Shown here: positions 10,978 to 64,000 of the stretch, in pieces | Layout of the letters: each line of letters starts with the position of its first letter | Position numbering within the stretch: position 1 is the first letter of the stretch | Assembly: GCA_904063045.1 (NCBI GenBank) | Contig: CAJFCJ010000013.1 | Coordinates: 974,156 to 1,038,155, forward strand | From: Dimorphilus gyrociliatus | Taxonomy: Eukaryota > Animalia > Annelida | DNA length: 64,000 bases | Direction: 5' to 3' | Translations under genes and position numbers: made by a program | Notes under the pieces: generated by a model | Databases searched by the model: none | What the model was told of the DNA's origin: nothing | What the model saw: the letters and a program-made list of their open reading frames with translations, nothing else

Positions 10978-13900
10978 TTACAATAGAAGGCAAGCTTGAC
11001 TTCTTAATCGACTCTGTTTCGTTATTAGATTAGCAACTTTACTTTTCTTTGTACAGAGAGGATTCTCTTCATCTGCCTCATCGTCATCATTAACAGTTGT
11101 ATTACTTTCAACTTCTAAAGTCCTCTTTAATTCACAATTCTCATCAATATTTTCGAGTATATCTTCGTAGTACTTGTCGGTTTTACCCACTGTTGCCAAG
11201 ATCATATCTGTCTCCAAAACGTTAACTCGCGGTTGTTTCTGATGATAAGAACAAAGCCAAGAGATATCGCCATTCCCAATTTGACACTTTTTTAAATAGG
11301 CATCTTCTGTTCTAAAATAACTCTGAATTTCCGTCTCATTAAGGTATTCTATCATTGAAATATACGATGTTGAGAGCTGATCTACTGACAAAGACGACAT
11401 TTCGTTAAACTTATCGACAAGTGAATTTCCTATATTCGAATTTAAAGCTACTAAAGGAATATCGGTTTCCTTTAGAAGAGTATAAACTCTTGCAAGATAA
11501 GGTGACCAAGTCTTTATTATTTCAGTAGTTTTTTCATCGTCAGGTGAAACATTCCATTTTAAAGATTTGAAATTTTCCGGAAGATGCCATCCTTCGTCAC
11601 ATTCACATAGAAATACGAATCTATATCCCAATACTGTATCATTTTCTGATCCTTCTTCCAAGTCTAAAATAGGAAGGTGTGGTAGACTTCTAATGTTAAA
11701 GTGACTATGAATAAACAAGAAATTCTTTAGAAACTTTCTCTCTGCCAACTCAAGTAGTTCGTTTAGCTTAATTTTGTTATTAGATTCGTCTATATTTGTT
11801 TCACTTATATTATCTTCTTTTTCTTCGTCTTCTTCAAATTTCACATGTTCTTTAACAAACTTTAAAATTTCATTATCATTGTCTTCACAATATTGCAAAT
11901 CCACTTTTTGATAATCCATCGATAGCATTCCTATCTCGGATCTCATCCAATTTAGACCCGTTCCCACAACTGCAATAATGATTGGCAATCGAAGAGTCAT
12001 TGCTGCGAAACGAAATTCCATTTGGCAATTTTTCGAAGTAACGTATTCGTCGGAGACGCATGCAATGACTACTTTTGCACTCTTTAAACCTTCTGTAATA
12101 TCTTGAATCAGTCCAGTCTGACCAACCTGTTCAATATCCATCCAACAGCTAATACCTTCTCCTTCTAGTAGTTTCTTGATGCGGCGAGGGTCAACCTTCC
12201 CAATAGCTCCTTCTTTACGTTTCGTACCCTTTTCAACTGCCTCTTCAGAATTGCTCCAACAATAGCTGATAAAACAAGAGGCGGTCTTTCTTTTCTTGGT
12301 GCGATAGCTCTTTGACAGAGAGGAGAGAGAGCACATCAAATCTACCAGCTTGCTTTTCACATTTTGTGGATTTTGCATGTTGATATACAACTATAAGGCA
12401 AAAGAATAGGATAAGATAAGATTAGAATTACTTTATGGATATAATGTATATAGTATTTGAAATCCTACGTCATCTGCGCAGAGCATTCCGACGTCGCTAT
12501 CTTTTTTCCAGTTGTCACTTTTCTCCATGAGAACAATTTGAGTTTTTACTTTTAATTGTTTTTTTGAATATAGAAAAAGTTCTTTGCAAATTCGGCTTTT
12601 GAGAAAATGATCCGACATCAAAAATAGAATATCTTTAGCTTCTTTCAATGTTAAAATTGTATTCTGAATATTCGACTCGCAGCTTTCGTCCACCATTTTG
12701 CTGTATCAGTAAAATACGAAAAAGTATTAATTGCAAATGTTATCCGACTGCAAAACTAACATTGAGACTCCGGAATTCTTGATTTCATTTGATATAATTT
12801 TGAATGTATTTTCAAACGTCTGATTGTTTAAATCTTTCGATGAGAATAAGAATACAACGTATGTATCGAACTGTGAACGTAGCTTTCTTAGATTTCTTAC
12901 ATCATTTTCCAAATGGAAATCGAAATCGCTTGTCGTTTCTGGAGGAAGCATTCCTGTTCGTCGAAAGGAAACACAATTGCGCATTGGAGAATAATCTTAA
13001 TCAAGCAATTCCTTTATTTATTTATACCTTTGAGTTCAGTAATAGAAAGTGTATGGAAATTATCGGTACATTGGAGGAAAGGAATTTTCAAATCTATAGC
13101 CCTTTTTATTCTTGTGTAGGGTATAAGGCAAGGGTCTGTTGAACCCTGATGAATACATTCTTTACAGGAGATATAGCAGTCGTATTTCACTCCGACGAAT
13201 GTTTCTTGGATAAGATTTTTGAATATATCATAAACAAGGAAAAGAATATTTTCCGGTTGAGGTCCTCGTGCATCAATAATCACAGTATTTTTACTACCGA
13301 CAGTATGAATAAACTGATTTAGGCTAAAATCTATTTATACTTACTCTGTTTGCTTTAAAACTCCTCTATGGCGATTTTTCACAAGAAACGAACCATTTTT
13401 CCACATGTTTGCATCATCGCTGAACTGATATAGACGAACCTGAGCTCTATTGCACAATCCTGTTGGTAGATAGTCAAAGCGAAATACCATCTTTGCACGC
13501 GTCTCGTTCTCACCAATTTTCTCATGAAAGAACGTTTTTATCTCCTAAAGATTATGTAAAATGTAATATAGATGAAGCGTTGAAAACAATATGAGAAGTT
13601 AATGAAAGATTTTATATCCTACCTTAGGTTCTTCAATCTTTAATAAACATGGGATTATACTTGCAGGTTCATTTTTAATTGGAAATGTCAAATCAAATTC
13701 CTCAGTTAGTCTTAATAACCAAATATGTAATTCTTCCGGATATATGCTAGGTGACCAAATTTTATTAAGATCTTTATGCATCAATTTACCTTCCTAAGAA
13801 ATAAAAACACGTAAAAAAAATATTGTTATTGAGTCAATTTGACAAACTATTATTGAAGTTTCGTGAACTGATATAAGACAAGCCATCACGTCAATAATCC

Positions 13901-16900
13901 ACTGAGAATTAATAATAATCTTAGATTTGAGGAATTCATTTTGAAAATGTTGAATTGATCCTAATTCGTGTAAGAATTCGGTTGCTTGAAAGATCTATAT
14001 AAAGAAATATAATGATATTTAATTTTTCTATCATCTTTATCTACCTCGGAAATGTCATTTATTCCGCATTCATTTGCATATTGACACACAGTTTCCCATG
14101 ATAGAAGATTTTTAAATGACTTTTCACTATTGTAACAAAGAATAGTTAAATTATCATAGAAAGATACGGAAGAGAATATCTTACCTGAGCATCTTTTGTT
14201 CGAAATTTAGATAAGCTAACGGAATCTTTTCATCCATGTACTTTTCTTTCAATGTTTCAGTTATCAAATCATCAACTAATTTGTCAATACCCTTTTTTTT
14301 TAAAAAGAAAACTTAGATAGGAAATTAGCTATATTTAATAGATTTCTCTTTAAAATTATACCTGTCCAGTGAATGAGGAAACTAAATGAAAGCTCGATAT
14401 TTGAGGAAATAATCTCTGTAACTCTTTCATTGGAAGATCAGTTTTCTCTACCTGTTTATTAGAGTAGTTTAAATAATGTCTCTTTGTGATTCTATCCAAT
14501 TACCTTGTCAATTTGTGTGCCAACAATAAAAATGGGAGCATTCGGTGCGTGACAAGCTATTGAACTCAACCAGAATTTCAATCCTGAATGTTCGTAACCA
14601 CTTCTCATGTTCCACAATAGAAAATATATTGCCCTATTCGTTAGGAAAAATTGATGAGTATTATAATATACTTCTTGCCCTGCGAAATCCCATATTGAAT
14701 ATTCTATCGAGTTAATTTTCCATGTTTTAATATCAATTCCATCTGTAACATCTGGTAATGTTTCTTCCGATTCTGTATCTTCTTCCGATTGTGTCATTTT
14801 GCGAATTAAACTAGTTTTACCGGCTCCTCCAAGTCCAACAAGCATCAGTTTTGTCCTTCTACACTCAACTGATCCTTCATGCAGTCTTCTCATATAGCTC
14901 ATTATCGCAGGGAGTCCCTTATTTACAATTTCTCTCGGTGGAGTTTTCAGAGATGGACAGCCGTCTAAATTCAAAGTGTGTATTGGTAATTTACATATTG
15001 CATGGTCGATTTCCTCAAGGAGAAGATTGTAAGACAGATTTAAAGATTTTAAATGTCTCAAGTATTTTACATTATAATCCAAAGTTTTAAAAGCTTGATT
15101 TGATAAGTTTAAAGTTTCCAATTTACTCAATGAAAATGAATTATCAAGTTGTTTCAAAGGGGCAGAAGTCATATGGGGAAGCCTTTCGTACATCTTTGCA
15201 GAGAAATATGCCTTCTCATCGGGAAGTTTCGTTTGTGTTTTGTTATCCTTTACGCTTTCCTTAAATATTGTTTTCAAACATTCCTCGTCAAGGCCAATAG
15301 AGGAGTAGAGCTTTGTCTTTCCCTTAGCTATGCATTCTCTATCTAATAGGTTCTGATAGTCCATTGTTTGAATAGAGATTGAGCTCAAGTGTAAAATCTT
15401 CAAGTTGTACAATTGAAAAATTACTTTTGGAAAATCTTTGAGAATGTTATCATTAAATATCATTGAGATAAGCTGAGTTAAAAGTGAAAGTTCTTTCGGT
15501 AACGTTGGTATCGGATTACCACTAATATCGAGTTCACGTAGAAACTTTAATGTAGTAATCTCTATTGGAAATTCTTCAAGTGAATTTTCAATTAATGTTA
15601 ATGATAACAAATATTTGGACGATTTTGAAATAATATCTTGTAGTTTATCATCGAATTTTGAGAATGAATAGAGCCATAAACTATTATCGGATGTTTCTTG
15701 AACATTAAACGATTCAAGTGATTTATCTTTGGAATGCAAATCACACAATTCCGTTTGAATATGCAGTTGTTCTTCCAATTCAGATTCGCATTTTTCAAGA
15801 AGCTATAATAAAAAATAATTAGGCTATTTTTATTAAATAATCTTTAAATGTATATTCTATTGTTACTTGTTTAAAAGTAGTGCCTGTTAAGTTTCCAATA
15901 TATCCAGTTTCAATGGCCAATAAGCAGAAATAGTCTATGAGTTGAACAAACCAAGGTAACGAATAGAATGGGTGAAAGCTTTCTGAAAACTTGAATGACA
16001 GATTTTTTCTTTAAAAAATAAAAGTATGAAAAAAAATTACGTTATTTACTTACCATAGTTTTCTGGTTTAAGATCTTTGAAATCTGAATCATTATGATTA
16101 TCTTAAGTGGTTTATTAACGGGAAATAGCTCTTTTGACGAACTGCGTATTATATGCATCTGGGGAGTTTTAGAGAAGCGAGTACCGATATCGCAAACTGG
16201 ATAAATAGTTGCGTATTTAAAATTTATGATATCCTTAAGCAGTAGAGGTCTTTCCCTTAACTCATTTGGAATTAATAATCTTCCTTCCAATTGGCTACTT
16301 ATCTTATTACTCATATTATCAAGATAATCAATCTCAAACAACTCCTGATGATAATCGAAGTTATCTGAAGGAAAATGAATATGATGAATAATATTTAACA
16401 AACACGTTACAAATATAATATAAATCAATTACAAAATTCTTGAAAGATTCCTTTCGTCCTTTCATTTAGTACAGTAGGCCTAAACAATGAAAAATCTTTA
16501 GCGTTTAGTAGGCGTTCAACTAGAGATTGAGAAACAATTGGCTTATTTAAATATTTTGAATGTTCATTCACTGTTGGATCATTTGTGAAATTTAATAAAA
16601 TCGATTGAAATTCATCAACACTTTTCCATGTTGGAGATGAATGATTGTTCTCCGTTATCAGGATTTCATTGTCAGTAACATCGGCTATAAAGTACATGTT
16701 ACTATTCGATTTGAATAATTCCCCAGGATAAATGAAATCATTGTTTGAAATATCCAAAATATGTTTCTATAAGTTAAAAATAGATTTACAAAAAAGAAGA
16801 TGATAATATATATATATAATCAAAATACTAAACTGGATAATATGTCAAGTCAATATCAACTAATGTATTATTATACGACATTTTGCATCTTTTATTCCAG

Positions 16901-34520: not shown

Positions 34521-37500
34521 TCAAGACACAACACATGCTCGACTAGTTTTTCGTTCTGTTGTGAATTCATTTGATTTTGCATTTAACTCTATATTTTCTT
34601 CCACAAAAGATTCAGAATGACCAACTATTTCAGCGGTATTTTCATTTACCACACTTGTTTCTTTTTTATCTTCTAAAAAGTTCTCTAACATATCTTCATA
34701 ATATTTATCAAAAATGTTAGAAGAATCCATATTTACGTTACCGTCTAGTACTCTAACTCTAGGCTGTTTTTGATGCTTAGCACATAACCACATTTTATTT
34801 CCAAATCCCATCTGACACTTTTTCAAATAAGCTTCATTCGAACAAAAGTATGCCTGATTTGTTTCGTCATTTGCCTTTTCAATTAAGGATATGTAGGCTT
34901 TTGAAAATTGGTCATTATCTGACTCCTCAAATAGAGAACAACTATTAGTAATTTTTTCAAGCAGAGTACTTCCTATATTCGAATTTAAAGCTACTAAAGG
35001 AATATCGGTTTCCTTTAGAAGAGTATAAACTCTTGCAAGATAAGGTGACCAAGTCTTTATTATTTCAGTAGTTTTTTCATCGTCAGGTGAAACATTCCAT
35101 TTTAAAGATTTGAAATTTTCCGGAAGATGCCATCCTTCGTCACATTCACATAGAAATACGAATCTATATCCCAATACTGTATCATTTTCTGATCCTTCTT
35201 CCAAGTCTAAAATAGGAAGGTGTGGTAAACCTCTAACACTATGATGATCGTGAATAGAAAGTACATTCTTTAGAAATTTCCTCTGTATTAGTTCTAGTAA
35301 TTCAATTAACTTGATTTTGGTATTAGATTCGTCTATATTTGTTTCGCTTATATTATCTTCTTTTTCTTCGTCTTCTTCAAATTTCACATGTTCTTTAACA
35401 AACTTTAAAATTTCATTATCATTGTCTTCACAATATTGCAAATCCACTTTTTGATAATCCATCGATAGCATTCCTATCTCGGATCTCATCCAATTTAGAC
35501 CCGTTCCCACAACTGCAATAATGATTGGCAATCGAAGAGTCATTGCTGCGAAACGAAATTCCATTTGGCAATTTTTCGAAGTAACGTATTCGTCGGAGAC
35601 GCATGCAATGACTACTTTTGCACTCTTTAAACCTTCTGTAATATCTTGAATCAGTCCAGTCTGACCAACCTGTTCAATATCCATCCAACAGCTAATACCT
35701 TCTCCTTCTAGTAGTTTCTTGATGCGGCGAGGGTCAACCTTCCCAATAGCTCCTTCTTTACGTTTCGTACCCTTTTCAACTGCCTCTTCAGAATTGCTCC
35801 AACAATAGCTGATAAAACAAGAGGCGGTCTTTCTTTTCTTGGCGCGATAGCTCTTTGACAGAGAGGAAAGAGAGCACATCAAATCTACCAGCTTGCTTTT
35901 CACATTTTGTGGATTTTGCATGTTGATATACAACTATAAGGCAAAAGAATAGGATAAGATAAGATCAGAATTACTTTATGGATATAATGTATATAGTATT
36001 TGAAATCCTACGTCATCTGCGCAGAGCATTCCGACGTCGCTATCTTTCTTCCAGTTGTCACTTTTCTCCATGAGAACAATTTGAGTTTTTACTTTTAATT
36101 GTTTTTTTGAATATAGAAAAAGTTCTTTGCAAATTCGGCTTTTGAGAAAATGATCCGACATCAAAAATAGAATATCTTTAGCTTCTTTCAATGTTAAAAT
36201 TGTATTCTGAATATTCGACTCGCAGCTTTCGTCCACCATTTTGCTGTATCAGTAAAATACGAAAAAGTATTAATTGCAAATGTTATCCGACTGCAAAACT
36301 AACATTGAGACTCCGGAATTCTTGATTTCATTTGATATAATTTTGAATGTATTTTCAAACGTCTGATTGTTTAAATCTTTCGATGAGAATAAGAATACAA
36401 CGTATGTATCGAACTGTGAACGTAGCTTTCTTAGATTTCTTACATCATTTTCCAAATGGAAATCGAAATCGCTTGTCGTTTCTGGAGGAAGCATTCCTGT
36501 TCGTCGAAAGGAAACACAATTGCGCATTGGAGAATAATCTTAATCAAGCAATTCCTTTATTTATTTATTACCTTTGAGTTCAGTAATAGAAAGTGTGTGG
36601 AAATTATCGGTACATTGGAGGAAAGGAATTTTCAAATCTATAGCCCTTTTTATTCTTGTGTAGGGTATAAGGCAAGGGTCTGTTGAACCCTGATGAATAC
36701 ATTCTTTACAGGAGATATAGCAGTCGTATTTCACTCCGACGAATGTTTCTTGGATAAGATTTTTGAATATATCATAAACAAGGAAAAGTATATTATCTGG
36801 TTGAGGTCCTCGTGCATCTATAACTATTGTATGCTCACTATGGGAGATAATATTTATCAGTTAATGGTTTTTATTGTTAGAAATTGTTATACATACTCAT
36901 TTTTCAATAAAACTCCTCTATGGCGATTTTTCACAAGAAACGAACCATTTTTCCACATGTTTGTATCATCACTGAACTGATAGAGACGAACCTGAGCTCT
37001 GTTACATAAACCTGAGGGGAGATAGTCAAAATTGAAAACCATTTTTGTTCGAATTTCGTTGTCTGACAGCTGGCTTTTAAAGAATTGTTCCAAGGACTAA
37101 AGGATTGCAAGAGTAAAGCGCTATACTATAAGTATAATTATTTCGGATAAATTTTACCGTTGGTTCATCTATTGTTAGTAAACATGGAATCAGGCTCGCT
37201 TTTTCACCTTTGAGTGGAAACGTTAAATCAAACTCTTCTGTTAGTTTTAGAAGCCATGTATGTAGTTCTTCCTGATATTTCTCCTTTGGCCATATCCTCT
37301 TGAAATCTTGATGCAGTAGTTTTCCGTCCTATAAGAAATAATTTATTTTGTTTTTTTTTTCATAAATTCATTCATTTATTCTCACTTTAATGGTATTTTG
37401 TCGAACTGATATAAGACAAGCCATCACATCAATAATCCATTGAGGGTTAATAATAATTTTAGATTTAAGAAACTCATTTTGAAAATGTTGAATTGATCCT

Positions 37501-40500
37501 AATTCGTGTAAGAATTCAGTGGCTTGAAAAATCTGCAAAAATTCAAAAAGTTGTCTAAAATCTATAAAAGGATTATTTATAGATAATTACCTCCCATGTA
37601 TCAATTATTCCACATTCGTTTGCAAGTTTACAAACTTTGTCTATGTCTAACAAGTTATCTGCATTTTTCTTGTTTTTTTCACTGTATGAGATACATTTTT
37701 TTTAAAGGATGAAAATTTCAATTGCATAACTTACTTAATGAGTTTCTTTTCAAATTCCAGATATGCAACAGGTATTTTCTCATCCATATACTTTTCCTTT
37801 ATTGTTTCAGTAATTAAATCATTAATCAATTCTTGAATACCCTTATATTGAAAAATTCGTTATAGAGCATACAATGTTTCAGTTTGACTCCATACCTGTC
37901 CACTAATGGTAGAAACATAATGGAATCCTGAAATTTGTGGAAATGATTCTTTCAAGTCTTCAACAGGAAGTTCAGATATTTCCACCTGTTGTAATTTGAT
38001 ATTTAATAACAGTACATTACATTATAGAAGAAAATTTTGAAATAAATATCTATTCTACCAACCTCATCGACGTGCGAGCCTATAATGAAAATAGGGGATT
38101 TTGGCGCGTGACAGGCTATTGAACTCAACCAGAATTTCAATCCTGAATGTTCGTAACCACTTCTCATGTTCCACAATAGAAAATATATTGCCCTATTCGT
38201 TAGGAAAAATTGATGAGTATTATAATATACTTCTTGCCCTGCGAAATCCCATATTGAATATTCTATCGAGTTAATTTTCCATGTTTTAATATCAATTCCA
38301 TCTGTAACATCTGGTAATGTTTCTTCCGATTCTGTATCTTCTTCCGATTGTGTCATTTTGCGAATTAAACTAGTTTTACCGGCTCCTCCAAGTCCAACTA
38401 GCATCAGTTTTGTCCTTCTACACTCAACTGATCCTTCATGTAATCTTCTCATATAGCCCATAATAACCGCCTCTCCTTTGCTAGCAATTTCTCTTGGTGG
38501 TGTTTTTAGCGAAGGACAGCCATTTAATTTCAATGTTCGAATAGGTAAGTAGCATATCTCCGGATTGATCTCCTCAAGGACTAAGTTGTGCGATAGATCC
38601 AAGAATCTTAAACTTTTCAGAAATTTAATACCACCATCTAAAACTTTAAATGACTGGTACGATAAATCTAAGTGAGTAAGCTTTCCTATAGAAATTTCAT
38701 TCTTTAACTGAGAAAGAGGAGAGGAAGTCATATGAGGTATTTTTTTATAGAGTTTAGCACAAAATGCTGCTTTTTCATCAGCATCATAGATATAAGTAGT
38801 ATTCTTTATGGCACAACTTGAAAACAAAGATTCTAAATCTTTCATTGTAAGATTAATAGCAGAAAAAATTCCTTCATACTCTTCTCGATAATCGCTGAGG
38901 GTCTTTAAGGTTACGTTTCCTTTTATTGAAGGATAGTGAAAAGAATTCAGGAAACAAGATTTTAGATTGTAAAGTTTGAAGATAACACTCGGAAATTCTC
39001 TGAAAATATTATTTTTCACTGATAATTTCTCCAAGTGCACTAAGTTTGATAGCTCGTCCGGTAATTGATTAATTGGCATTCCATCAATATCAAGTCTAAT
39101 AAGATATTTCAGTTTAGTTATGCTTTGAGGAAATTCAGTTAAGGAACTTTTTTCAATTGTTATTGTCAATAAAGTTTGGACTGATTTATGGAACGATTGA
39201 TAAAATTGCTCGTTTACATTTGATAGCGTTAAAAAGAGTAGCGTGTCATCCGAAATTGTTTTCCAAACACTACTTGAACTAACATTAGGTGAGTTTACTT
39301 TAACATGCAAATCACAAGCTTTTACATCAAGTTGAAATTGGTCTTTCATATTCGTTTCAATGGTTTTCAACATCTATGAAATGATTTATAAGAATAAAAC
39401 TAATTAAATTTGAATAAAATTATACCATTTCAATATTATCTTCTGATAAATTTTTCGTATATCCAGTATTCAGTGCCAAAATACAGAAATAACTTTTCAA
39501 TTGAGCGAACAAAGGTAAGAGAAAGGAAAAGTAGAAATCTTCTGATACCTGAACGAAACAAGATTATTAAACAAAATCATTGAAGAATTCAGCATAAACA
39601 ATTACAATCATATCTGGACTTAGGAAACGAGCTATGTTTAACATCATAATTTTTTTCATTGTATCTGATGTAATTGGTAGTTTTCTTGGAAATTTTTGCA
39701 TTATATGTTTCATCGGCTGTTTTGCAAAATCTGAACTATCGGAGCATATTGGGTATAGAGATGCCGACTTTAAGTCCACCATATTCTTTAGTAATGGAGG
39801 AATATTTTCTAGTTGATTGGGAATTAGAAAAGATCCTCTTATCAACTTTTCTGGAGAGTTATTCTTGATGTATGATAAGAAAGGTTTCAAGTTCATATTC
39901 AGATAGTCTTAAAATTAAACTTCAGTATTATACAGTATAACAAAATACGAAAATTGATGTTCAATTAAATCTTACATTGTTTAGAAATTTTGTCGTAAGT
40001 TCTCTCATTTAATACCTCGGGTTGAAATAATGAGAAACTATCGGCTGTCTTTAATTTTTCAATGAGACTTGGAGAGGCAAAAGGCCTATTTAGAAAAATG
40101 GAAATTTTCTGTGCAAGTTCTGAACTTTCTGGGAAAAACAAACAAATATTACAAAGAAACAGATAATAGAAATTCAAGTTAAATAACTAACTTGAAGCAT
40201 CTTGTACTAAGGCTTTAAAACTGTCAAAGTCAACCCAATCGGGATATTTATCTGTGTTGTACTTAATCAAAATTTGATTTTCCTTTACATCAACTATTTA
40301 TAGAATATGAAAGTATATTATCATCTATTAAAGATTAAAACGTTCCAAAGAGCACTTACTAATATAAATTTGTCTCTTTTTCGAAATGAAGATCATTCCG
40401 GGCATTAATTTTTCAGTTGAAGACTTGAACTGTCTATCCTTTAAGTAAAAGATAAAAATTTAGTCCCTAAAACAAAAAATCACTTATATTTTTTTACTGG

Positions 40501-46544: not shown

Positions 46545-47528
46545 TTAATAGTCTAACAGCTCTCCGTTGCCTGAAATCACATTCGAAAGTCTATCTCTAA
46601 AGGACAGTACAAATAATTTGCAATGATCCTCGTTGAGTGACTCCCAAGCCTCGAAGATAGCTTGCTTTAGGTCATCTGTAGACTTGAACTTTCTTCCGTT
46701 TCTGTAAACGCACTTTGCCAACATTCCCCAGTACTTTTCGGCCAGGTTGAGATCAGGAGATTTCAGAGGCCAAGAAATTCTGGAGATTTCCTTCTCCATC
46801 AGATACTGCTTTGTCAGTCTTGACCTCAGTGGGGTATCGCTTCCGTGCAGAAAAATGAAATCATCTCCGTATAGACGGTGTGCTGCTGGAAGAAACTGGT
46901 CTTCAAAAAGTTCTATATACTTATCTGCTTTCTTTGTACGATTAACAACAATAAGGGGGAGTAGTCCTTTATAAGACACACCTCCCCATATTAGTACTGA
47001 AGATGATCCTGCACGCTTTCTCGAAAACATTGGGTCATTAGTTCTGAGGTCATGCCAGAAAAAGCCAATTCCATCAGGACCGTCCAAATTAAAACGCTTT
47101 TGACCCATAAAAATAACTCTATCCCATCTTTGAAACGCTAAAAGTTCTTTACAAAATTTGACTCTGTTCCGATGGTCTTTTGAACATAGCGAGGGCTTAA
47201 CATTGACAACAAGGGTTTTCTGTTTCTCCTCATTTAGAACCCTTTGAATGGTCCTTAAGCTCCCATCTAACTTATATTGTTCCTTCAATTGAGCAGCCGT
47301 CTTTTTAGTATTAATGGAAGCCCTTATAATTTCCAAAACGTTTTCGCCATGAATCTTTTTACGACCGCATCTCTTCTGATTTTCTTCATAGTGAGGATTT
47401 TTCAGAAACCTTAATATAGTCGAATGGTGACGATTAATTTGTACTGCAATTTGTCTTGCTGAAGAGCGTGACTTATTTAGCTTTATAGCTAACTGTTCAC
47501 GAGAGGATAATCTCGCTCCACGTGCCAT
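46545..47528 (-). CDS. Intact full-length Tc3-like (Tc1/mariner) transposase-derived protein with a mutated catalytic triad; candidate domesticated gene
   Basis: 327 aa, collinear with C. elegans Tc3A (MARG..LS, bipartite HTH, FNLDGPDG, WHDLR, WPxxSPDLN). VFSDE reads IFMGQ and FQQDN reads FLHGS; the Glu at +34 is retained. No terminal inverted repeats seen by eye. Confidence 0.85.
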   Translation of the reverse strand: MARGARLSSREQLAIKLNKSRSSARQIAVQINRHHSTILRFLKNPHYEENQKRCGRKKIHGENVLEIIRASINTKKTAAQLKEQYKLDGSLRTIQRVLNEEKQKTLVVNVKPSLCSKDHRNRVKFCKELLAFQRWDRVIFMGQKRFNLDGPDGIGFFWHDLRTNDPMFSRKRAGSSSVLIWGGVSYKGLLPLIVVNRTKKADKYIELFEDQFLPAAHRLYGDDFIFLHGSDTPLRSRLTKQYLMEKEISRISWPLKSPDLNLAEKYWGMLAKCVYRNGRKFKSTDDLKQAIFEAWESLNEDHCKLFVLSFRDRLSNVISGNGELLDY

Positions 47529-48851: not shown

Positions 48852-50232
48852 ATGAGCAATTCGGAAATTGAATATCTGGCCGAGGTTCACAGACGAATGA
48901 AGAAGAAAAAGACGAATTCCTTACTTACTCCGAGTGAATATTTCATTATTGTTGAACGATTCAATACTCTAAGAGAGAATCCAAATGCGACAAAAATAAA
49001 ATCGGACGATTCGATAATGAAACGATACGAGCTTAGAGAAGTTAAAGACGAAGAGGACGATGAAATCAAGCAAATGTTATTTAAAAAAGGTACTACTTTG
49101 AAAATAATGACTTCGGACAAGCTGTATCAAACACTTATGGACCTTCACATCGAAACCGGCCATAAAGGAAGAGACTTTCTTCGTAGAGCCGTTGCGGACA
49201 AGTACGCTAACATTACATCAGAATGTATGCAGTTATTCCTTGATATGTGTCAAGTCTGTCGAAGCGGTAAGCAGACTAACTTAAGTGAGGTTAAGTCTAG
49301 TATGGTAATGGAAAAAGTGAGACAGTCTCGCGGCTACTTTACATTTTTGGACAAACACCGCGAACAAATCAAAGATTATAAATACATACTTGTGTACCAA
49401 GATTTTGCAACTCGATTCGTTATGATACGTCCACTAGCCCAGATATCGTCGTTCGAAGTAGCTAAAAGATTGATAGAGCATTTTACTGACAAGGGTTCGC
49501 CAATTGTTTTGGAAAGTAATGTTGAAAATTCGTTCCTTACCCGCGTAACCGACCATCTCTTTAAGATGTGGCCCCAATGCAACGTTCTAACTGGTAGAAC
49601 TAAGTCAGGCTTAATTCTTAACGCAATGGAGGATACTATAGCGGAAATTCATCGCTACATGTATAGCTGGATGAAAATGAAAAGTGATTTTACTGATAAT
49701 TGGGTTGAAGGTTTAAAGTATATTCAATGGGAAATCAACTCTTCGTTTAATCATAGTAAGATTTTTTTCAACTAATAGATAAGAGTTTTATTAATATATC
49801 CGTTTTTGTTGAACAGGTATTGGATGTTCGCCTTGCGAAGCAGCTTTCGATACGAAACCGTTCATGGGCAGCGCTTGCTTAAATTTACCAGCTAAGGTTG
49901 CGGCGAGAGTCTACAATGAGGATCAGCTCGAAACTTATCTTAGATTGAGAACTATTCCGAAAGGCGAAGGTCGAAAAGTAAGCATAACCTCGGCAAAGTT
50001 TATTTGCTCGAGATGCTTCACTACTTACGAAAGTTCGACTTACAATCCGGAAACGTGTTTGACTTGTAAAATCAACGAAGGAGTCGAGATGGGAGATTCA
50101 TCAAAAAGAGCTCTTGAACCATTGGATGCCAGAAGTATGGAACTATTTGAAAAGAAATCGAGAACAAGCAAGGATGGTGAAAATAAAGAAAATAAGATTC
50201 GTACCGTTTCCGAGCTATTTTTCACCATCTAA
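48852..50232 (+). CDS. KRBA2/SCAND3-like (Gin/Ginger-type) integrase-derived protein, 2 exons (48852-49755, 49817-50232), 439 aa, catalytic Asp residues replaced
   Basis: HHCC finger (HIETGH...CQVC), YQDFATRF (YQDHLTKF), GSPIVLESN (GAPxILQSD) and WP. The phase-1 intron joins to give HSIGCSPCEAAF (HxxIxxSPYEAMF). C-terminal CxxC...CxxC. Confidence 0.85.
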
Positions 50233-53176: not shown

Positions 53177-53869
53177 TGTCGTCGAAGAATTCCGATAGAG
53201 TGATAAAGATGGTGTCGGATGACCCCACTGACGTCGTCTCACTACTAACGAAGGCATATAAACTCTGCTGGGCATCTTACAAGTCTACACGAGAATACTC
53301 ATGGAATGCTAGACTTTACAATGTTCTAATCGTATTGTACCGGCACACAGGGTCGGTAAGAGGCACTTGCCTAATATAATTAACATAGGAGAAGTTACTC
53401 CAATAGAATCAGAAAAAGACACCAACAGCGGAGATACGATATGGAAACAGTAATGTCAAGCAAATTGAAAGTGACTCTTAACTCTTTGTTTAATTGTACT
53501 ATTTCTCATATTTTCTTAATTATAAGTAAGAAATGCTTACGTTTTTGTCTTAAACTTTTACTCACTCCAACTTCACTCGATTTTCTCCAACTTGTCGATC
53601 TATGTGATAACGATAATCAAGCGAAAGATTAATATTATATACATTTCTTTCCGTATTTTTCGTGGAGTGAAGAAGAGTAATATCACATTGATAACTAAGG
53701 TGAAAGATATTGTAGGACGTCGATAAAAGTTCCCTCAAAGAATACGCATATTGTAGATCATAGTAATGCCATCTATAGTTTTTAAGTCGTTTTTCTGGTT
53801 TTTTGAGTATTTTAACGAAGTCGATACTCTTTTAAGGATATGAAGAAAAAATGGTAGATATAGGTGTTG

Positions 53870-53899
53870 TATAAATAGCGCAAATCTAAGTAGACTATT
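53870..53899 (+). promoter_or_regulatory. Conserved -30 TATA-like element upstream of canonical 5S genes (example copy)
   Basis: TATAAATAGCGCAAATCTAAGTAGACTATT directly precedes +1. A similar TATAAAT/TTTAAAT box lies at about -30 of the canonical copies. Confidence 0.75.
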
Positions 53900-54018
53900 G
53901 TATACGGCCATACGACGTTACAAGCACCGGTTCTCGTCCGATCACCGAAGTTAAATGACGTACGGCCCAGTCAGTACTTGGATGGGAGACCGCCTGGGAA
54001 CACTGGGTGCCGTATTCT
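53900..54018 (+). rRNA. 5S: 5S rRNA, canonical type
   Basis: Identical 119-mer plus T-run. Confidence 0.97.
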
Positions 54019-54228
54019 TTTTATCTTTTTTTTCTTCTCTTTCTCTCAATTTTTCTTCCTTTCCTATAAAATGAAATATTTACGAGAGGTCTTCGAATGT
54101 TTTCTTTATGATTCAACGAGAAAACCATGTCATTAACATTTTTTGACATGAATTGAAAGAAGAGATTTTGTGTCTATTGGACTTAATGCTATATTTGATA
54201 CATGAACCTTAACATAGGCTACCTTATT

Positions 54229-54347
54229 GTATACGGCCATCTGACGTTACAAACACCGGTTCTCGTCCGATCACCGAAGTTAAATGACGTACAGCCCAGT
54301 CAGTACTTGAGTAGGAGACTTTCTGGGAACACTGGGTGCCGTATTCT
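54229..54347 (+). rRNA. 5S: 5S rRNA, variant type
   Basis: 10 substitutions relative to canonical, mostly compensatory in helices II and IV. T-run terminator present. Confidence 0.9.
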
Positions 54348-54716
54348 TTTTATCTTCTTTTATATTCCGTTTATTTTTCAACTAAAGTTCAACGTTATTT
54401 TCATTTTATTTTTGATTATTAAAGATTGAATTTACTTTCAATCTTAGAATATTCGAAAAGTTGCAGATCTTCTCATTCGTGTTTGTAATCTTTTCGCAAT
54501 GATTTTCGCAAACTTTGCTGATTTTTCGTTGACTTTATTAATTCTGTCACATCTTTATCGTCAATATGAATATGAGTACTAAAAATGAATTAGAGGATAA
54601 AAACTAAAGACAACAACAGGGAATGAATGACTGAGAAAGGAAAAAAGAGAAAAAAGAATAAGGCACCACAGGAAAAAGACAGATGGTGGAAAGAAAGTAG
54701 AAGAAAAAAATGAAAA

Positions 54717-54835
54717 AGAATACGGCACCCAGTGTTCCCAGGCGGTCTCCCATCCAAGTACTGACTGGGCCGTACGTCATTTAACTTCGGTGATCGGACG
54801 AGAACCGGTGCTTGTAACGTCGTATGGCCGTATAC
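54717..54835 (-). rRNA. 5S: 5S rRNA, canonical type
   Basis: Identical 119-mer. Confidence 0.97.
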
Positions 54836-55436
54836 AATTGACTACTTAGATTTGCGCTATTTATACGACATCTATATTTAATTATATTCACCCCAAGTCG
54901 TTTACGTTTCCTTTGAATTGTATATTGCAGTAATCGCTCAATGTTTATTATACTAGTTTATTTAGCAAATAAAGATTACTCTTTTTTCGTATAAATATGC
55001 AAATGCAATCATATTAAGTTATCGAACAAAGTCATATCATAAAGACTAGGTACCGTATTTTTTTTTCTTTTTTTCCTCTCTATTCTCCTCTTGACTCTCT
55101 ATCCGACTAGTACAAATGGTTGAAACTCTGTTATACGGTCAAACGATGTGTTCTTTTTGTTTTTTTCTTTCTTCTTGAGCTCTCTTAAAATTTCACAAGC
55201 GTCTTCTCAGATTTTTACTTGAAATAGAAGAGTGATAAACTCAAGCAAGTTAGGCTAATGATGATTGAAAGGTGAAATGTTGCTGCCATTTGCAGACGAA
55301 AACAACGATGTTTCACTATATTGTTAAAAAGATTTAAGAGATTGAAGGTTAAATATATCTGTTGTATAAATAGCGTAAAGTTAAGCACAGTGTTGTATAG
55401 GTGCTGTATAAATAGTGCATAGTTAAGTAGTCAATT

Positions 55437-55555
55437 GTATACGGCCATACGACGTTACAAGCACCGGTTCTCGTCCGATCACCGAAGTTAAATGACGTAC
55501 GGCCCAGTCAGTACTTGGATGGGAGACCGCCTGGGAACACTGGGTGCCGTATTCT
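55437..55555 (+). rRNA. 5S: 5S rRNA, canonical type (upstream TATA element duplicated)
   Basis: Identical 119-mer. TGTATAAATAG occurs twice upstream (about 55365 and 55405). Confidence 0.97.
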
Positions 55556-57081
55556 TTTTCTTTTTTTTCTTCTGTTTTCCTTCCGTTCCCTGTCTTTTTC
55601 TTCTTAATCTTAATTTTTTATCCACGACCAATCATTTTGATTTCATTTTCTTTTTCCGCCAGTCTTTCTTCATGCTCTTTAAGCCATACATTTTTGCGAG
55701 ATGACAGAAAGAGGAGACTTTTTAAAAGATGTTGAAGGAAATAATTTTCGTTCATCTATTGAAGTTGTCTGTTGTATAACTCAGCGTGTATTTCTATGTA
55801 AGACATTTGGTATTGCTCATATATGTAATTGAGCGATAGTTGTTTTTTTCCTTCATTATATTTGATTTGCATTACACTACTGTATTTTCGGCGTTTACGC
55901 TGTTTCGAGAATCGATGCTCAAGTACTGATGCTTGTGATGTGTATCCTTTTACATATATATATATTTGCTTCTAATTTTCGCTTTGCTGGCGAAATCGAA
56001 TGAAAATATTGTTGTCAAAAAGGGATGTTAAACTGAGATTCTGATTTGAAAAAATGCGTGTTATGATGAGGAATTGTTATCAAGTAAATATTATAGTAAA
56101 CCACTTTGTGTTTTAACGCCAAAGTATAACAAGAGTTTCTTCCTTTGTTTCTCTTAAAAAGATTTGTTGACCGCACTTTTTCATCACTATTAAATAATCA
56201 GTGAGAAGTGTCAATGACTTTACCTTAACGTTATAGAATAGTAGATAATTGGTTAATAATACCCTCTATAGTATGGTTGAAATAAATATTAGGATTTGTA
56301 AGGTTAAGAATCCATTGGATAAATGGCCCAAAAATTGACGTGGAGTGAATATGATTTTTTAAAACTAAATAACATAACCAAACTTGGAAATTTAATAAAG
56401 AGGGAAGTGCTAAAGTAAACTTAGTTTTCAAAGACGATATCAATAAAATAATTATAGTACCATGATAATGTAGGATTTAGGGCAACTAAATTTAGGATTT
56501 ATGAAAATATTAGAATAAATATTAGATTTATTAAAATACTCAAATGCTTCTAGTAGATGCTATGCTTGCGTTTCAACAATATTTAATACTTGAGAAACTT
56601 AGTTAGATTTGTTTATGAATACTTTTAGTAGCAAGGTAGACTAACTACTGTCACTGTCAAAGTGCTCCGCTATCTATCATAACATTTCAGGCTTGATACA
56701 AAAACTGTATACAAATTGATATAAAATATATAGGAAATTTCCTAAACAAGCATAACCGAAAGCTAAAAATTAAAAGAGCAAGAGCTATGTTAACAATGGA
56801 AATGTGCCTATAAATTTCTGGCAAGAAATTAGAATAATGAAAGGTGAAAAGTAAATCTAACAGCCAGTAATGTTTCTGTTGACAGATAAGCTTACAATTT
56901 CATTATTAAATGATGTTATTGTTGAAAAGTTTAAATTTTTTTAAAAATTGTGATAAAGTGAAGCCTATGCCGCCATTTGTAGGTGAAGACAAAAACGTTC
57001 CATTATATTGTTAAAAAGTTTTAAGAGAAAGAAGATTAAATATAAGTGTTCTATAAATAGCGGAAAGTAAAGTAGTCAATT

Positions 57082-57200
57082 GTATACGGCCATACGACGT
57101 TACAAGCACCGGTTCTCGTCCGATCACCGAAGTTAAATGACGTACGGCCCAGTCAGTACTTGGATGGGAGACCGCCTGGGAACACTGGGTGCCGTATTCT
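57082..57200 (+). rRNA. 5S: 5S rRNA, canonical type
   Basis: Identical 119-mer. Confidence 0.97.
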
Positions 57201-57569
57201 TTTTCATTTTTTTCTTCTACTTTCTTTCCACCATCTGTCTTTTTCCTGTGGTGCCTTATTCTTTTTTCTCTTTTTTCCTTTCTCAGTCATTCATTCCCTG
57301 TTGTTGTCTTTAGTTTTTATCCTCTAATTCATTTTTAGTACTCATACTCATATTGACGATAAAGATGTGACAGAATTAATAAAGTCAACGAAAAATCAGC
57401 AAAGTTTGCGAAAATCTTTGCGAAAAGATTACAAACACGAATGAGAAGATCTGCAACTTTTCGAATATTCTAAGATTGAAAGTAAATTCAATCTTTAATA
57501 ATCAAAAATAAAATGAAAATAACGTTGAACTTTAGTTGAAAAATAAACGGAAAATAAAAGAAGATAAAA

Positions 57570-57688
57570 AGAATACGGCACCCAATGTTCCCAGAAAGTC
57601 TCCTACTCAAGTACTGACTGGGCTGTACGTCATTTAACTTCGGTGATCGGACGAGAACCGGTGTTTGTAACGTCAGATGGCCGTATAC
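57570..57688 (-). rRNA. 5S: 5S rRNA, variant type
   Basis: Same 10 changes plus C104T (G-U wobble in helix V). Confidence 0.9.
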
Positions 57689-57900
57689 AATAAGGTAGCC
57701 TATGTTAAGGTTCATGTATCAAATATAGCATTAAGTCCAATAGACACAAAATCTCTTCTTTCAATTCATGTCAAAAAATGTTAATGACATGGTTTTCTTG
57801 TTGAATCATAAAGAAAACATTCGAAAAACTTCCCGTAAATATTTCATTTAATAGGAAAGGGAGAAAAATTAAGAGAAAGAGAAGAAAAAAAAAGATAAAA

Positions 57901-58019
57901 AGAATACGGCACCCAGTGTTCCCAGGCGGTCTCCCATCCAAGTACTGACTGGGCCGTACGTCATTTAACTTCGGTGATCGGACGAGAACCGGTGCTTGTA
58001 ACGTCGTATGGCCGTATAC
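57901..58019 (-). rRNA. 5S: 5S rRNA, canonical type
   Basis: Identical 119-mer. Confidence 0.97.
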
Positions 58020-58627
58020 AATTGACAACATAAATTTGCGCTATTTATACGACATTTATATTTAATTACATTCACCCCAAGTCGTTTAAGTTTCCGTTGA
58101 ATTGTATATTACAGTAATCGGCTTAATGTTTATTATACTAGTTTATTAACTTTACGCCATTTATACAACAATCATATCAAACTTCTTTCAACCTAGGAAC
58201 ATCAACTCAAAAAAAATGCTTAAAAAAAGCAAAGTGATTTCGATGGTATAAGTGATATAGACGCTTTTAAATGCGTATTTTTAAAAAAACCTCTTATTGA
58301 TATTACAGTTTTTTCCTCCACCAAAATGATAAAAAGAGCTTAGTACAATAAATTATCACCCACTCGATTATCGCTAATATCTAAATCGATAAGTTGGAGA
58401 AAATCGAGTGAAGTTGGAGTAACTAGAAGATTTTTCCGTAAAATTTCAAAATAAAAATCTGACATACTGGAAGTTGAAGGCTAAAACTGAACGATTGCCT
58501 CGATTTGGTTGACAGATATGTTTCCGTTGTTTTATTTAATGAAGATATTACTGAAATATTCATGTTTTATGAATAATTTTTATAAATGTACATGTGGTAT
58601 AAATAGCGAAAAGTTAAGTAGTCAATT

Positions 58628-58746
58628 GTATACGGCCATACGACGTTACAAGCACCGGTTCTCGTCCGATCACCGAAGTTAAATGACGTACGGCCCAGTC
58701 AGTACTTGGATGGGAGACCGCCTGGGAACACTGGGTGCCGTATTCT
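58628..58746 (+). rRNA. 5S: 5S rRNA, canonical type
   Basis: Identical 119-mer. Confidence 0.97.
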
Positions 58747-59006
58747 TTTACCCACTTTTTCGCCTTCTTCTTTCTCTCCAAACTCTCTCTTATTTATTCT
58801 AATCGAATTATCTATGATAAGTAAGACCCTGTTGTATTTTTTTGGTTTTATTAGTTTATCTTTGTTTATCACCTTACCACATTTTCCTCAAATTTTTCTT
58901 TCAATTAAAAACTGACTAATAAGAAGAGAATCTCTTTATAATCTTCATTTTTCATCGTTTATAGATGAAAGAGAACTGAAAAGGGCCAGAAGTCATATTC
59001 TATGTA

Positions 59007-59445
59007 GATGAATCTCCCATCTCGACTCCTTCGTTGATTTTACAAGTCAAACACGTTTCCGGATTGTAAGTCGAACTTTCGTAAGTAGTGAAGCATCTCG
59101 AGCAAATAAACTTTGCCGAGGTTATGCTTACTTTTCGACCTTCGCCTTTCGGAATAGTTCTCAATCTAAGATAAGTTTCGAGCTGATCCTCATTGTAGAC
59201 TCTCGCCGCAACCTTAGCTGGTAAATTTAAGCAAGCGCTGCCCATGAACGGTTTCGTATCGAAAGCTGCTTCGCAAGGCGAACATCCAATACCTGTTCAA
59301 CAAAAACGGATATATTAATAAAACTCTTATCTATTAGTTGAAAAAAATCTTACTATGATTAAACGAAGAGTTGATTTCCCATTGAATATACTTTAAACCT
59401 TCAACCCAATTATCAGTAAAATCACTTTTCATTTTCATCCAGCTA
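59007..59445 (-). pseudogene. Inverted 439-bp duplicate of part of the integrase-derived gene (49664-50102), intron included
   Basis: The reverse complement matches end to end with no mismatch seen by eye, including intron 49756-49816. Confidence 0.95.
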
Positions 59446-59765
59446 GCGCAACATAAAGCAAATTTTTTGATAAAATGAAAAAATGAAACACTTTTCGTTG
59501 AAATGTAAATGGTTGTCCGCAAACAATATCTCTCTTTAAACTACTCGTTCAGCTGTAAAAATGATAACTTCATTGTACGAACAAGAACTGATTCTATGAA
59601 TGTCTTGCAGCGAAAATTTCTACATTGAATTAACGTCAAAAAATGTTAATCAAATGGTTTTCTCGTTTAATCATAAAGAAAATATTCGAAAAACTTCCCG
59701 TAAATATTTCATTTAATAGGAAAGGGAGAAAAATTAAGAGAAAGAGAAGAAAAAAAAAGAATAAA

Positions 59766-59884
59766 AGAATACGGCACCCAGTGTTCCCAGGCGGTCTCCC
59801 ATCCAAGTACTGACTGGGCCGTACGTCATTTAACTTCGGTGATCGGACGAGAACCGGTGCTTGTAACGTCGTATGGCCGTATAC
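59766..59884 (-). rRNA. 5S: 5S rRNA, canonical type
   Basis: Identical 119-mer. Confidence 0.97.
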
Positions 59885-60536
59885 AACAGACTGCTTAATT
59901 TTACGGTATTTATACCAATTTTAATTTTTTTAAATTATTTATACAACATGAAAACTTTACAGTTAATATCTTTAAGTAAGAAAACGAAAATATATCTATC
60001 ACAAGAAACCACGTGAGCTTTTAGTTTTCGTCTTCATCTTTCATCATCCTAGTTTCTTTAGAAGCTTTTCAGAAACTTAATAAACACTCAATCTCACTTC
60101 AAACACATTCGACTAACTTTCGTACATCTAGATAATAATGATAATCGGATGGAAAACTTTTCTATTATATACAGTTCTCTTTGTTATTTTCGTGAAGAAA
60201 AAAGAAGTGTTTTATAATTGTCAAATTAGGTGCAAGATATTGTCGGAGCTTAAAAGGTATTCGTCTAAAAACATGCGCTGAATAAAAAGTCTAGCAATAT
60301 CACAGATGCTATTAAAATCATTTTGTTTTATTTTGAGCATTTTATTAGACTCGATATTCGTATACGATTTAAAAAGAATGAGGTTAGTGGTAGATAAAGA
60401 ACTGAACTCCGGTGTTGTTTCTGTTGATACATAGCTTTTGATTTGATATTGAATGATATGAATTAAAGTTCACATTATTCAAAGAATTTAATGAACCCAT
60501 ATGTGATATAAATAGCCCATAGTCAAGTAGACTATT

Positions 60537-60655
60537 GTATACGGCCATACGACGTTACAAGCACCGGTTCTCGTCCGATCACCGAAGTTAAATGACGTAC
60601 GGCCCAGTCAGTACTTGGATGGGAGACCGCCTGGGAACACTGGGTGCCGTATTCT
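60537..60655 (+). rRNA. 5S: 5S rRNA, canonical type
   Basis: Identical 119-mer. Confidence 0.97.
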
Positions 60656-61223
60656 TTTACCTCTTTTTTCGTGAATTTTCTGTCCGTTCACTGTCGTTTT
60701 CCTCTCAATCTTTATTCATTTTCCTCGATAAGTCATTTCGATTGTATTTTTTCAACGAACCAAAAGATGTCTGAGCTATATTTCAGAAGAAAAGATGTTG
60801 AAGATATTGTATGTAAAGTTGAAATAATCACTTTGCCTAAACTGACTTTTCTGCTGACTTCGGCCAACTTTTCCTATTTTTGATCTCTCAATTTATCTCT
60901 TTTTTTGGATTCTATTTCCATTTCTTCTATCTGTTTACGCATACGCCTTTTCTCTTAGAGTTTTCTTTAACTGTATAAAACTATCTAGAAGGCGACAATA
61001 TATATTAAACGAAGAAACATAAAAATGTATTTCTATATAAAAAAAGAAACGAGTCGTCCATAGTGTTGAATCTGTTTTGAGAGTCCAATTGTGCTAGAAA
61101 GCAAACCAGTTGGTTTTGAAATCAGTGATAAACGATTTTCTTTGAGTAACGGAAACATCACTGAAAACTAAAATGGAACACATATGAAAGTTAGGACAGT
61201 TGACTGTTGAAAAAAAGACAAAA

Positions 61224-61244
61224 AGAATACGGCACCCAGTATAC
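61224..61244 (-). pseudogene. 5S gene with a 98-nt internal deletion (only the two ends remain)
   Basis: The plus strand AGAATACGGCACCCAGTATAC fuses the 3' end to the 5' end over a shared GT. The terminator A-run and upstream AATAGTCTACTT...TTTAAA flank remain. Confidence 0.9.
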
Positions 61245-61670
61245 AATAGTCTACTTAAATTTATGATATTTAAATGCAGTATAATTAATACCTAGTGACG
61301 TTTTAAAGATATTCTCCCCAAATAGCTTATGGTAATAGTCAATTCAGAAAGTAAAAAGAAAAAGAAAAGAAAAAAGGCAAAATTGACTTCACAGATAACG
61401 ATTTCAACATTCTCCATTCAATCTCTCAATCTCATTTAAATTTGCTGCATTATTGAAGTCATGTTCCCCTTGTTTAATGGTAGTTAATGCACATTGATAA
61501 ATTATCGATATTGTCAACCGTTTCTGAATATTGGATTTAACTAAATTTTATGATTCAACAAGAAAACCATGTCATTAACATTTTTTGACATGAATTGAAA
61601 GAAGAGATTTTGTGTCTATTGGACTTAATGCTATATTTGATACATGAACCTTAACATAGGCTACCTTATT

Positions 61671-61789
61671 GTATACGGCCATCTGACGTTACAAACACCG
61701 GTTCTCGTCCGATCACCGAAGTTAAATGACGTACAGCCCAGTCAGTACTTGAGTAGGAGACTTTCTGGGAACATTGGGTGCCGTATTCT
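61671..61789 (+). rRNA. 5S: 5S rRNA, variant type
   Basis: Same variant as 57570-57688. Confidence 0.9.
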
Positions 61790-62158
61790 TTTTATCTTCT
61801 TTTATATTCCGTTTATTTTTCAACTAAAGTTCAAAGTTATTTTCATTTTATTTTGAATTATTAAAGATTGAACTCACTTTCAATCTTAGAATATTCGAAA
61901 AGTTGCGGATCTTCTCATTCATGTTTGTAATCCTTTCGCAATGATTTTCGCAAAGTTTGCTGATTTTTCGTAGACTTTATTTATTCTGTCACATCTTTAT
62001 CGTCAATATGAAAATGAGTACTAAAAATGAATTAGAGGATAAAAACTAAAGACAACAACAGGGAATGAATGACTGAGAAAGGAAAAAAGAGAAAAAAGAA
62101 TAAGGCACCACAGGAAAAAGACAGATGGTGGAAAGAAAGTAGAAGAAAAAAATGAAAA

Positions 62159-62277
62159 AGAATACGGCACCCAGTGTTCCCAGGCGGTCTCCCATCCAAG
62201 TACTGACTGGGCCGTACGTCATTTAACTTCGGTGATCGGACGAGAACCGGTGCTTGTAACGTCGTATGGCCGTATAC
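62159..62277 (-). rRNA. 5S: 5S rRNA, canonical type
   Basis: Identical 119-mer. Confidence 0.97.
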
Positions 62278-63117
62278 AACAGTCTACTTAGATTTGCGCT
62301 ATTTATACAACAGCTATATTTAACCTTTTTTCTTCATATTCTTACAGAACATTGACTCCAACAAATAATGGCAGAGAGTCCTTTCTATCACTGACGTATA
62401 AAAGTATTTTTTTTAAATTTTAAGTACTTGCAATTCTTATATTAAAAAATATTGACAAACCAATTCTATTGCCCTTTTTGCAATGTAACATATTTTTCTT
62501 ATCTAGTTTGTATTACAAAAATTTTCAGTTTTATTAAAGAAAAGTTGCTCTCTTATTGAGTGATCTATTGAGTAGTAGATAATGTGTTAAATAGAGACTT
62601 TTAAAACAAGAACGTAAGCATTTCTTACATATAATTAAGAAAATATAATTAAGAATTTAAGAGTGACTTTCAATTTGCTTGGGGTTACTGTTCGAATGTC
62701 TTTTTCTTATTCTATTGTCAACTGATAATGTAATCCCTGTCATATTTTAATATAGGCGATATTGGTCGAGCATAGGGTTACACTTTCGGCAGCTTCCATT
62801 AATCTGGAAGAGTAATTTATATTCATAAGATAAAGACTATAACATTTTTGTGGTAGATCTCAAATGGCTTATAGTAGTTCGATTGTTGAGCTTCAATAGT
62901 TTGGATATGAGCCGGGATTGTCAATAGTTTGACAGATATTGGATTCGTAAAGACAATGTAATGACTAGAAGAGAGCAGAAGGAAAAAAATGTAATGGAAA
63001 ATGAAGTGAAAATCATCATTAGTTGAAAGAATTAAGTTTATGAGTTTTGTACAGAAATCTAGAATGACAGTTTTGAGAGGCAAAGAGAACGAAATTAGAA
63101 AGAAAGCAGTCGAAAAA

Positions 63118-63943: not shown

Positions 63944-64000
63944 GTATACGGCCATACGACGTTACAAGCACCGGTTCTCGTCCGATCACCGAAGTTAAAT
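63944..64000 (+). rRNA. 5S: 5S rRNA, canonical type, truncated by the window end
   Basis: First 57 nt identical to canonical. Confidence 0.93.

Follow-up and report, generated by a model that had tools for sequence, protein, structure and literature searches.

A putative second 5S rRNA gene type with compensated stem changes and a diverged box C in the annelid Dimorphilus gyrociliatus

The occurrence of two 5S ribosomal RNA (rRNA) types in one genome is a known phenomenon, and genomes of this kind have become the classic model for gene switching by transcription-factor affinity and a part of the case for specialised ribosomes. To our knowledge, the well-documented examples are almost all from vertebrates. 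Xenopus and zebrafish have oocyte (maternal) and somatic 5S genes (PMC5340908), turtles and crocodiles have an oocyte-expressed second gene, NOR-5S (PMC8789306), and box C is regarded, in Xenopus, as the main binding site of TFIIIA (PMC8789306; PMC5340908). Here, we describe variant 5S genes in a 64,000-nt stretch of the annelid Dimorphilus gyrociliatus, C13:974156-1038155 (C13 is contig CAJFCJ010000013.1; the whole stretch is called the window below, and plain coordinates refer to it). What is unusual in this genome is that box C and helix IV, which hardly vary in the known systems, have diverged. A literature search for 5S variants in annelids or for 5S rRNA in D. gyrociliatus returned nothing relevant, and the words rRNA and ribosomal are absent from the D. 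gyrociliatus genome paper (PMC7854359).

The window was searched with the Rfam covariance model RF00001 (gathering score 38), and 15 5S genes in both orientations were found between 52.7 and 64.0 kb. Eleven are identical canonical genes of 119 nt, each scoring 107.6 bits. Three are variant genes that cover model positions 1-120 and score 97.7-99.7 bits, far above the gathering score. An earlier reading of the window made without database searches (hereafter the sequence-only reading) had counted 11 identical canonical genes and three variants differing at 10 of 119 nt, and our base-by-base comparison reproduced these counts exactly. The changes are A13C, C14T, G25A, G65A, G82A, A83G, G85A, C92T, G93T and C94T. 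All ten had been listed in the sequence-only reading, and its list is incomplete for two of the variants, which add C104T. The 5S genes of the window are:

53900..54018, plus strand: canonical 5S gene, representative of the 11 identical genes (RF00001 and base-by-base comparison)
54229..54347, plus strand: variant 5S gene, ten changes relative to the canonical gene (RF00001, 99.7 bits, full length)
57570..57688, minus strand: variant 5S gene, the ten changes and C104T (RF00001, 97.7 bits)
61671..61789, plus strand: variant 5S gene, the ten changes and C104T (RF00001, 97.7 bits)
52690 (minus), 54717 (minus), 55437 (plus), 57082 (plus), 57901 (minus), 58628 (plus), 59766 (minus), 60537 (plus), 62159 (minus) and 63118 (minus): the other ten canonical 5S genes (RF00001)
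63944-64000, plus strand: a twelfth canonical 5S gene, cut by the window end, whose full form carries C73T

Across the genome (77.9 Mb in 349 contigs), the canonical box C word is found in 43 genes, which form three clusters on C13 (at about 0.54, 0.58 and 1.03-1.05 Mb) with nine singles on five other contigs. The variant box C is found in six genes, all in the 1.03-1.05 Mb cluster and three of them beyond the window. Thus, the variant makes up about one in nine 5S genes (~6 of 49 copies). The three genes beyond the window are:

C13:1045415-1045533: variant 5S gene identical to the 54229 gene, in the continuation of the cluster
C13:1041300-1041418, minus strand: diverged variant 5S gene, lacking G25A and carrying G18A and C60T
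C13:1041943-1042061, 3.8 kb past the window end: chimeric 5S gene, a recombinant of both types

The changes in the variant genes were mapped on the consensus pairs of Rfam and on the usual eukaryotic helix IV, with the following results:

C14T with G65A: C-G becomes U-A
G82A with C94T: G-C becomes A-U
G85A with C92T: G-C becomes A-U
G25A: G25.U52 becomes A-U
C104T: G71-C104 becomes G.U
G18A with C60T, in the diverged copy only: G-C becomes A-U
A83G with G93T: U84.G93 with A83 bulged becomes G83.U93 with U84 bulged (constrained folding)

The sequence-only reading had proposed that pairs 14-65, 82-94 and 85-92 are compensated and that the register shifts at 83/84-93. In the three pairs both sides have indeed changed with pairing kept on the standard fold, and constrained folding reproduced the shift. 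Its further claim that eight of the ten changes preserve structure was right in principle and low in count, as nine of ten do so when the pairing of G25A is included. The sole loop change, A13C in loop A, can add a C13-G66 pair in folding, and loops B, C, D and E are identical in the two types. The variant retains the five-helix, three-way-junction fold, with all pairs kept or compensated except for the register shift at 83/84-93. The standard fold of the variant has an energy of -33.9 kcal/mol (-39.0 kcal/mol for the canonical type, both constrained) and lies within 1.2 kcal/mol of the variant's own minimum, or 3.5 kcal/mol for the C104T copies.

When the nine distinct 5S sequences found in the genome are compared, compensated changes occur in four pairs (14-65, 82-94, 85-92 and 18-60), and 95.9% of cells are paired. 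RNAalifold, run without a supplied structure, returned the same fold and recovered the same four pairs. When ten random substitutions were simulated with the observed share of transitions, at least three compensated pairs arose at a rate of 3.5e-5, and at 1.2e-4 when G/C positions were made three times more mutable. These rates bear out the proposal that random decay of a pseudogene is unlikely to give such changes. For the 18-60 double change the chance was 0.004, or 0.013 when all three differences of the diverged copy were counted. Of the sites that differ among variant copies, all four keep pairing, and no pair is simply broken. Because the variant flank described below was already in place when the 18-60 change arose, structural constraint probably continued after this flank was acquired. 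Taken together, the differences between the two types preserve the fold far beyond chance, and the variant type appears to have been shaped by selection on RNA structure. The ten changes that separate it from the canonical type are derived.

We then compared the promoters. Canonical-type genes carry T(A/T)TAAATAG at -30 to -22 in 39-41 of 42 cases, including the dispersed singles with otherwise unrelated flanks. Each position of this upstream box is conserved at 69-100% across the 42 genes (most positions at 93-100%), and TT directly precedes the gene. At the same place the variants read TACATGAAC, in agreement with the claim that their -30 box is missing; the box is absent from all full variant copies and is present in the chimera. 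The features flanking the first variant gene and its canonical neighbour are:

53870..53878, plus strand: TATAAATAG box, at -30 to -22 of the canonical gene 53900
54170..54228, plus strand: variant-specific upstream flank of about 60 nt, with TATATTT at -39 to -33
54348..54716, plus strand: terminator and variant-specific spacer of 369 nt, up to the convergent canonical gene

Within the gene, six of the 18 positions of box C (positions 80-97) differ from the canonical type, namely 82, 83, 85, 92, 93 and 94, so the changes are clustered in the box C region as had been noticed. Box A and the intermediate element are intact, with the canonical sequence at positions 50-64 and 67-72 and a single difference, at position 65. 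In every variant copy, the last C of the gene is followed by a terminator of at least four T.

Four variant copies are identical over the 70 nt directly upstream of the gene, and the diverged copy ceases to be homologous near -62; relative to the 61671 copy, the diverged copy has a deletion of about 95 nt in its upstream flank, between short direct repeats. A conserved variant-specific upstream element was considered and is unsupported, as 4-6 of 50 upstream positions differ between variant lineages. In a genome search, the variant upstream flank was confined to the 1.03-1.05 Mb cluster. The 369-nt spacer is common to all five full variant copies and has one match elsewhere in the genome, of 64 nt at 82% identity in the 0.54-Mb cluster. 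A mobile-element origin of the flanks was ruled out by the confinement of these sequences to the one cluster. A permissive Rfam search of the spacers found no other RNA gene near the gathering score of any family, and no tRNAs.

The chimeric gene joins the two types within a single copy. Upstream it has the canonical flank, including TATAAATAG, positions 1-77 are of the canonical type, and its 3' part carries C78T and a variant box C (G82A, A83T, G85A, C92T, G93T and C94T). Recombination or gene conversion has thus taken place between the two 5S types. The chimera is also a natural test construct, in which a canonical promoter is joined to a variant box C.

Variant and canonical genes are interleaved, 200-400 bp apart in one cluster, and they share a module of about 1 kb in which a canonical gene, a 210-nt spacer, a variant gene, a 369-nt spacer and an inverted canonical gene follow each other. 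The sequence-only reading had placed the variants in such a repeated module, and self-BLAST found its copies, direct and inverted, at 97-99% identity:

53858..54882, plus strand: module (self-BLAST, 97-99% identity to the other copies)
57035..58061, minus strand: inverted duplicate of the module (self-BLAST)
61547..62323, plus strand: partial duplicate of the module with variant gene, spacer and canonical gene (self-BLAST)

A further copy at the same level of identity lies beyond the window. Since the modules are 97-99% identical, the three variant genes of the window count as one evolutionary lineage; they are recent duplicates that are not independent of each other. The copies have multiplied recently by duplication and inversion of the module. 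We also counted variable sites over sites compared in the module copies, where the Fisher value is for variant gene against spacer:

Three module copies: spacers 29/648, canonical gene 0/238, variant gene 1/119, Fisher 0.07
Four module copies: spacers 27/527, canonical gene 0/119, variant gene 1/119, Fisher 0.043
Comparison with the diverged copy: spacers 24/328, canonical gene 0/119, variant gene 3/119, Fisher 0.07

The lower variation of the variant gene than of the spacers is a consistent but borderline sign of constraint. A stronger argument, though a qualitative one, comes from the pairing kept at all four sites at which variant copies differ and from the appearance of the 18-60 double change once the flank without the upstream box was in place.

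Sequencing runs were searched for the two types. In the DNA run X2, the variant upstream flank is joined to gene positions 1-40 with zero differences at a depth of 1337, the canonical unitig has a depth of about 13000 and a single-copy contig one of about 277. These depths imply about five variant and about 47 canonical genes. Because this estimate matches the assembly, the 5S family is not collapsed in it and the variant is no assembly artefact. Compared at 54254-54351 of the window, the same run also has, on a 7.6-kb contig without a counterpart in the assembly, a variant-type 5S gene that carries T76C and is covered at single-copy depth; it represents a polymorphic or missing copy. Two runs contain most of the searched stretch, and many contain 0.09-0.11 of the sampled words. 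In distinct 31-mers, the canonical gene alone accounts for about 0.095 of the words and both types for about 0.18. The word shares of the probable RNA runs are thus a weak hint against abundant variant RNA. Run X10, when compared with the variant stretch, gave a foreign 5S fragment only. Runs X6 and X12, both probably RNA, gave no match, which is no evidence of absence because a filter on the contigs can cause false negatives. A search of metagenomes for the variant box C found no match, either exact or with four inner positions left free.

We propose, with a probability of about 0.58, that the variant is a minor second 5S type under selection on RNA structure, probably transcribed, with altered promoter requirements. 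The claim that it is a distinct second type is supported by the fold-preserving changes, the six altered positions of 18 in box C and the different upstream flank, and the fourth compensated pair in the diverged copy, together with the lower variation of the variant gene than of the spacers, lends it further support. RNA polymerase III would transcribe the variant, using the internal promoter, and the resulting 5S RNA should be able to enter ribosomes. Because the upstream box is missing and a third of box C (6/18) differs, it should depend differently on TFIIIA and on upstream factors, and its expression may be weak or restricted to certain conditions. In the RNA, the difference would lie in helix IV, which touches large-subunit rRNA in the ribosome.

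Several observations weigh against this proposal. The -30 box, which even the dispersed canonical genes have kept, is missing from the variants, and the 45-50 nt upstream of the variants are conserved no better than the spacer. Box C is nearly invariant in the known dual systems, with one substitution there in the turtle NOR-5S (PMC8789306) compared with six here. The conserved loop A base A13 is changed, the fold is about 5 kcal/mol weaker than that of the canonical type, and the unconstrained minimum-energy structure is a misfold that uses the second CUGGG. The tests based on rates are only borderline (Fisher 0.04-0.07). Three small runs, probably transcriptomes, which comprise about 30-42 Mb of contigs and are labelled with the same organism as the best-matching run, have word shares of 0.09-0.11, which fit the canonical gene alone.

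Many of these observations would also be expected if the variant were a once-functional paralogue that was long under structural selection and is now silent, without its upstream promoter, no longer bound well by TFIIIA and carried along in segmental duplications, which we regard as possible and on balance doubtful. The absence of the -30 box and the six changes in box C would fit such a gene, as would the lack of any sign of the variant in the word shares of the probable RNA runs, the borderline rate tests, and a low copy number of recent duplicates in one cluster only. However, the G18A/C60T pair arose after the present flank was acquired, pairing is kept by each of the four substitutions that distinguish variant copies from one another, and the gene has an intact terminator, box A and intermediate element; nor has the variant been homogenised, despite canonical genes 200-400 bp away and the recombination between types recorded in the chimera. 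If silent, the variant would be a clear-cut case of an RNA gene that went out of use recently and is still marked by structural selection.

An explanation with no selection at all, in which a decaying pseudogene acquired its paired changes by chance, by GC-to-AT bias or by template switching in a hairpin, is extremely improbable. It is true that C>T and G>A make up 12 of the 16 substitution events observed, the pattern that mutation bias should give in an AT-rich genome, and that six changes cluster in one short hairpin. However, the GC-biased simulation with the observed transition share still gave about 1e-4 for three compensated pairs, pairs 14-65 and 18-60 span 42-51 nt, and none of the pairs is simply broken. 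This simulation (1.2e-4) ruled out that mutation bias alone was the cause, and template switching in the helix IV hairpin was ruled out by the two arms of the variant, G81-G86 (GAGTAG) and C91-C95 (CTTTC), which are not exact complements. Very unlikely, too, is a transcribed 5S-like RNA that acts outside the ribosome, for example as a stored or regulatory RNA binding TFIIIA or uL18. Such a role would account for a fold that is kept while the parts related to TFIIIA (loop A base 13 and helix IV with box C) have changed, but the loops in contact with ribosomal proteins and rRNA (C, E and the GAGA loop D) do not differ between the two types, and nothing points to a separate function.

The sequence-only reading had gone further and seen in the variant a separately regulated class used at a particular stage or in the germline. 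This proposal found no support here, and the layout of the genes departs from that of the known oocyte and somatic systems. That the variant is an independently controlled 5S class, working under a different TFIIIA-type factor or affinity regime and contributing to distinct ribosomes of a stage such as growing oocytes, is unlikely; if it were true, no such system would have been known before outside vertebrates, nor any in which box C itself has diverged. The candidate sits in a 5S family of about 50 genes, in a miniature annelid with a good assembly and public stage-specific RNA data, and, if expressed, it would offer a compact system for the joint change of a 5S gene and its TFIIIA site.

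Some further features of the 5S family and of the neighbourhood may be mentioned. The family, with only about 50 genes, is arranged in clusters of mixed orientation with no head-to-tail tandem array, and read depth agrees with its size. Canonical-type genes are 100% identical across the genome except for a few singles. One of these, C5:4454070-4454188, carries C68T, C73G and C118G, the last of which breaks G1-C118. It also lacks the upstream box and is probably a genuine pseudogene. Other single genes with private changes are C9:2444230-2444348 and C6:4667329-4667447. Among these three singles, T2A replaces the U2.U117 mismatch by A-U, with a score higher than that of the canonical gene, and A115G gives U.G. 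The 5S cluster also contains a short stretch of telomere-like CCCTAA repeats, about 600 nt 3' of C13:1041300-1041418 and past the neighbouring canonical gene. Elsewhere in the window we found:

46545-47528 (minus) and 48852-49775 (plus), head to head just upstream of the 5S cluster: an intact 327-aa Tc1/mariner-type transposase (DDE_3, Tc3 HTH) and a 307-aa frame with no Pfam match
10978-15778 and 34521-39373, both minus strand: two copies of a pair of open reading frames about 23.5 kb apart, a segmental duplication of putative immune-type genes, each pair with a 470-aa TIR-domain frame and a 428-456-aa LRR-Roc (ROCO-type GTPase) frame

How, then, does the variant compare with 5S genes described in other organisms? 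Like 5S pseudogenes and orphons, it has a low copy number, has lost the upstream box and has a weaker fold. Unlike 5S pseudogenes, which accumulate changes that break pairs, the variants have four compensated pairs and none that is simply broken. Neurospora crassa reportedly has alpha, beta and other 5S types (Selker and colleagues, 1980s), of which the minor ones differ from the major one at several positions, with paired changes, and its 5S genes are reported to require a TATA-like box upstream, near -29. Its 5S genes are said to be dispersed, and its minor RNAs to have been shown in ribosomes, whereas the genes here are clustered and the variant is without an upstream box.

The oocyte-expressed NOR-5S of turtles and crocodiles (PMC8789306) resembles the variant in being a second 5S gene of 119 nt with a classical fold and a genomic context of its own. 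In the turtle, however, NOR-5S lies in the 45S rDNA spacer and is about 20% diverged, with one substitution each in box C and in the intermediate element, whereas the variant is 8% diverged, differs at six box C positions and lies inside the 5S cluster. With the oocyte and somatic 5S genes of Xenopus and zebrafish (PMC5340908), the genes described here share the presence of two classes in one genome, the standard fold, different flanks and presumably different factor needs. In those animals differential expression has been shown. Their types occupy separate large arrays in which the maternal type is the more numerous, whereas here the variant is in the minority (6 versus 43) and is interleaved with the canonical genes in one cluster. 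Finally, the differences between the types of Xenopus and zebrafish lie mainly in loop B and box A, while those in D. gyrociliatus lie mainly in helix IV and box C.

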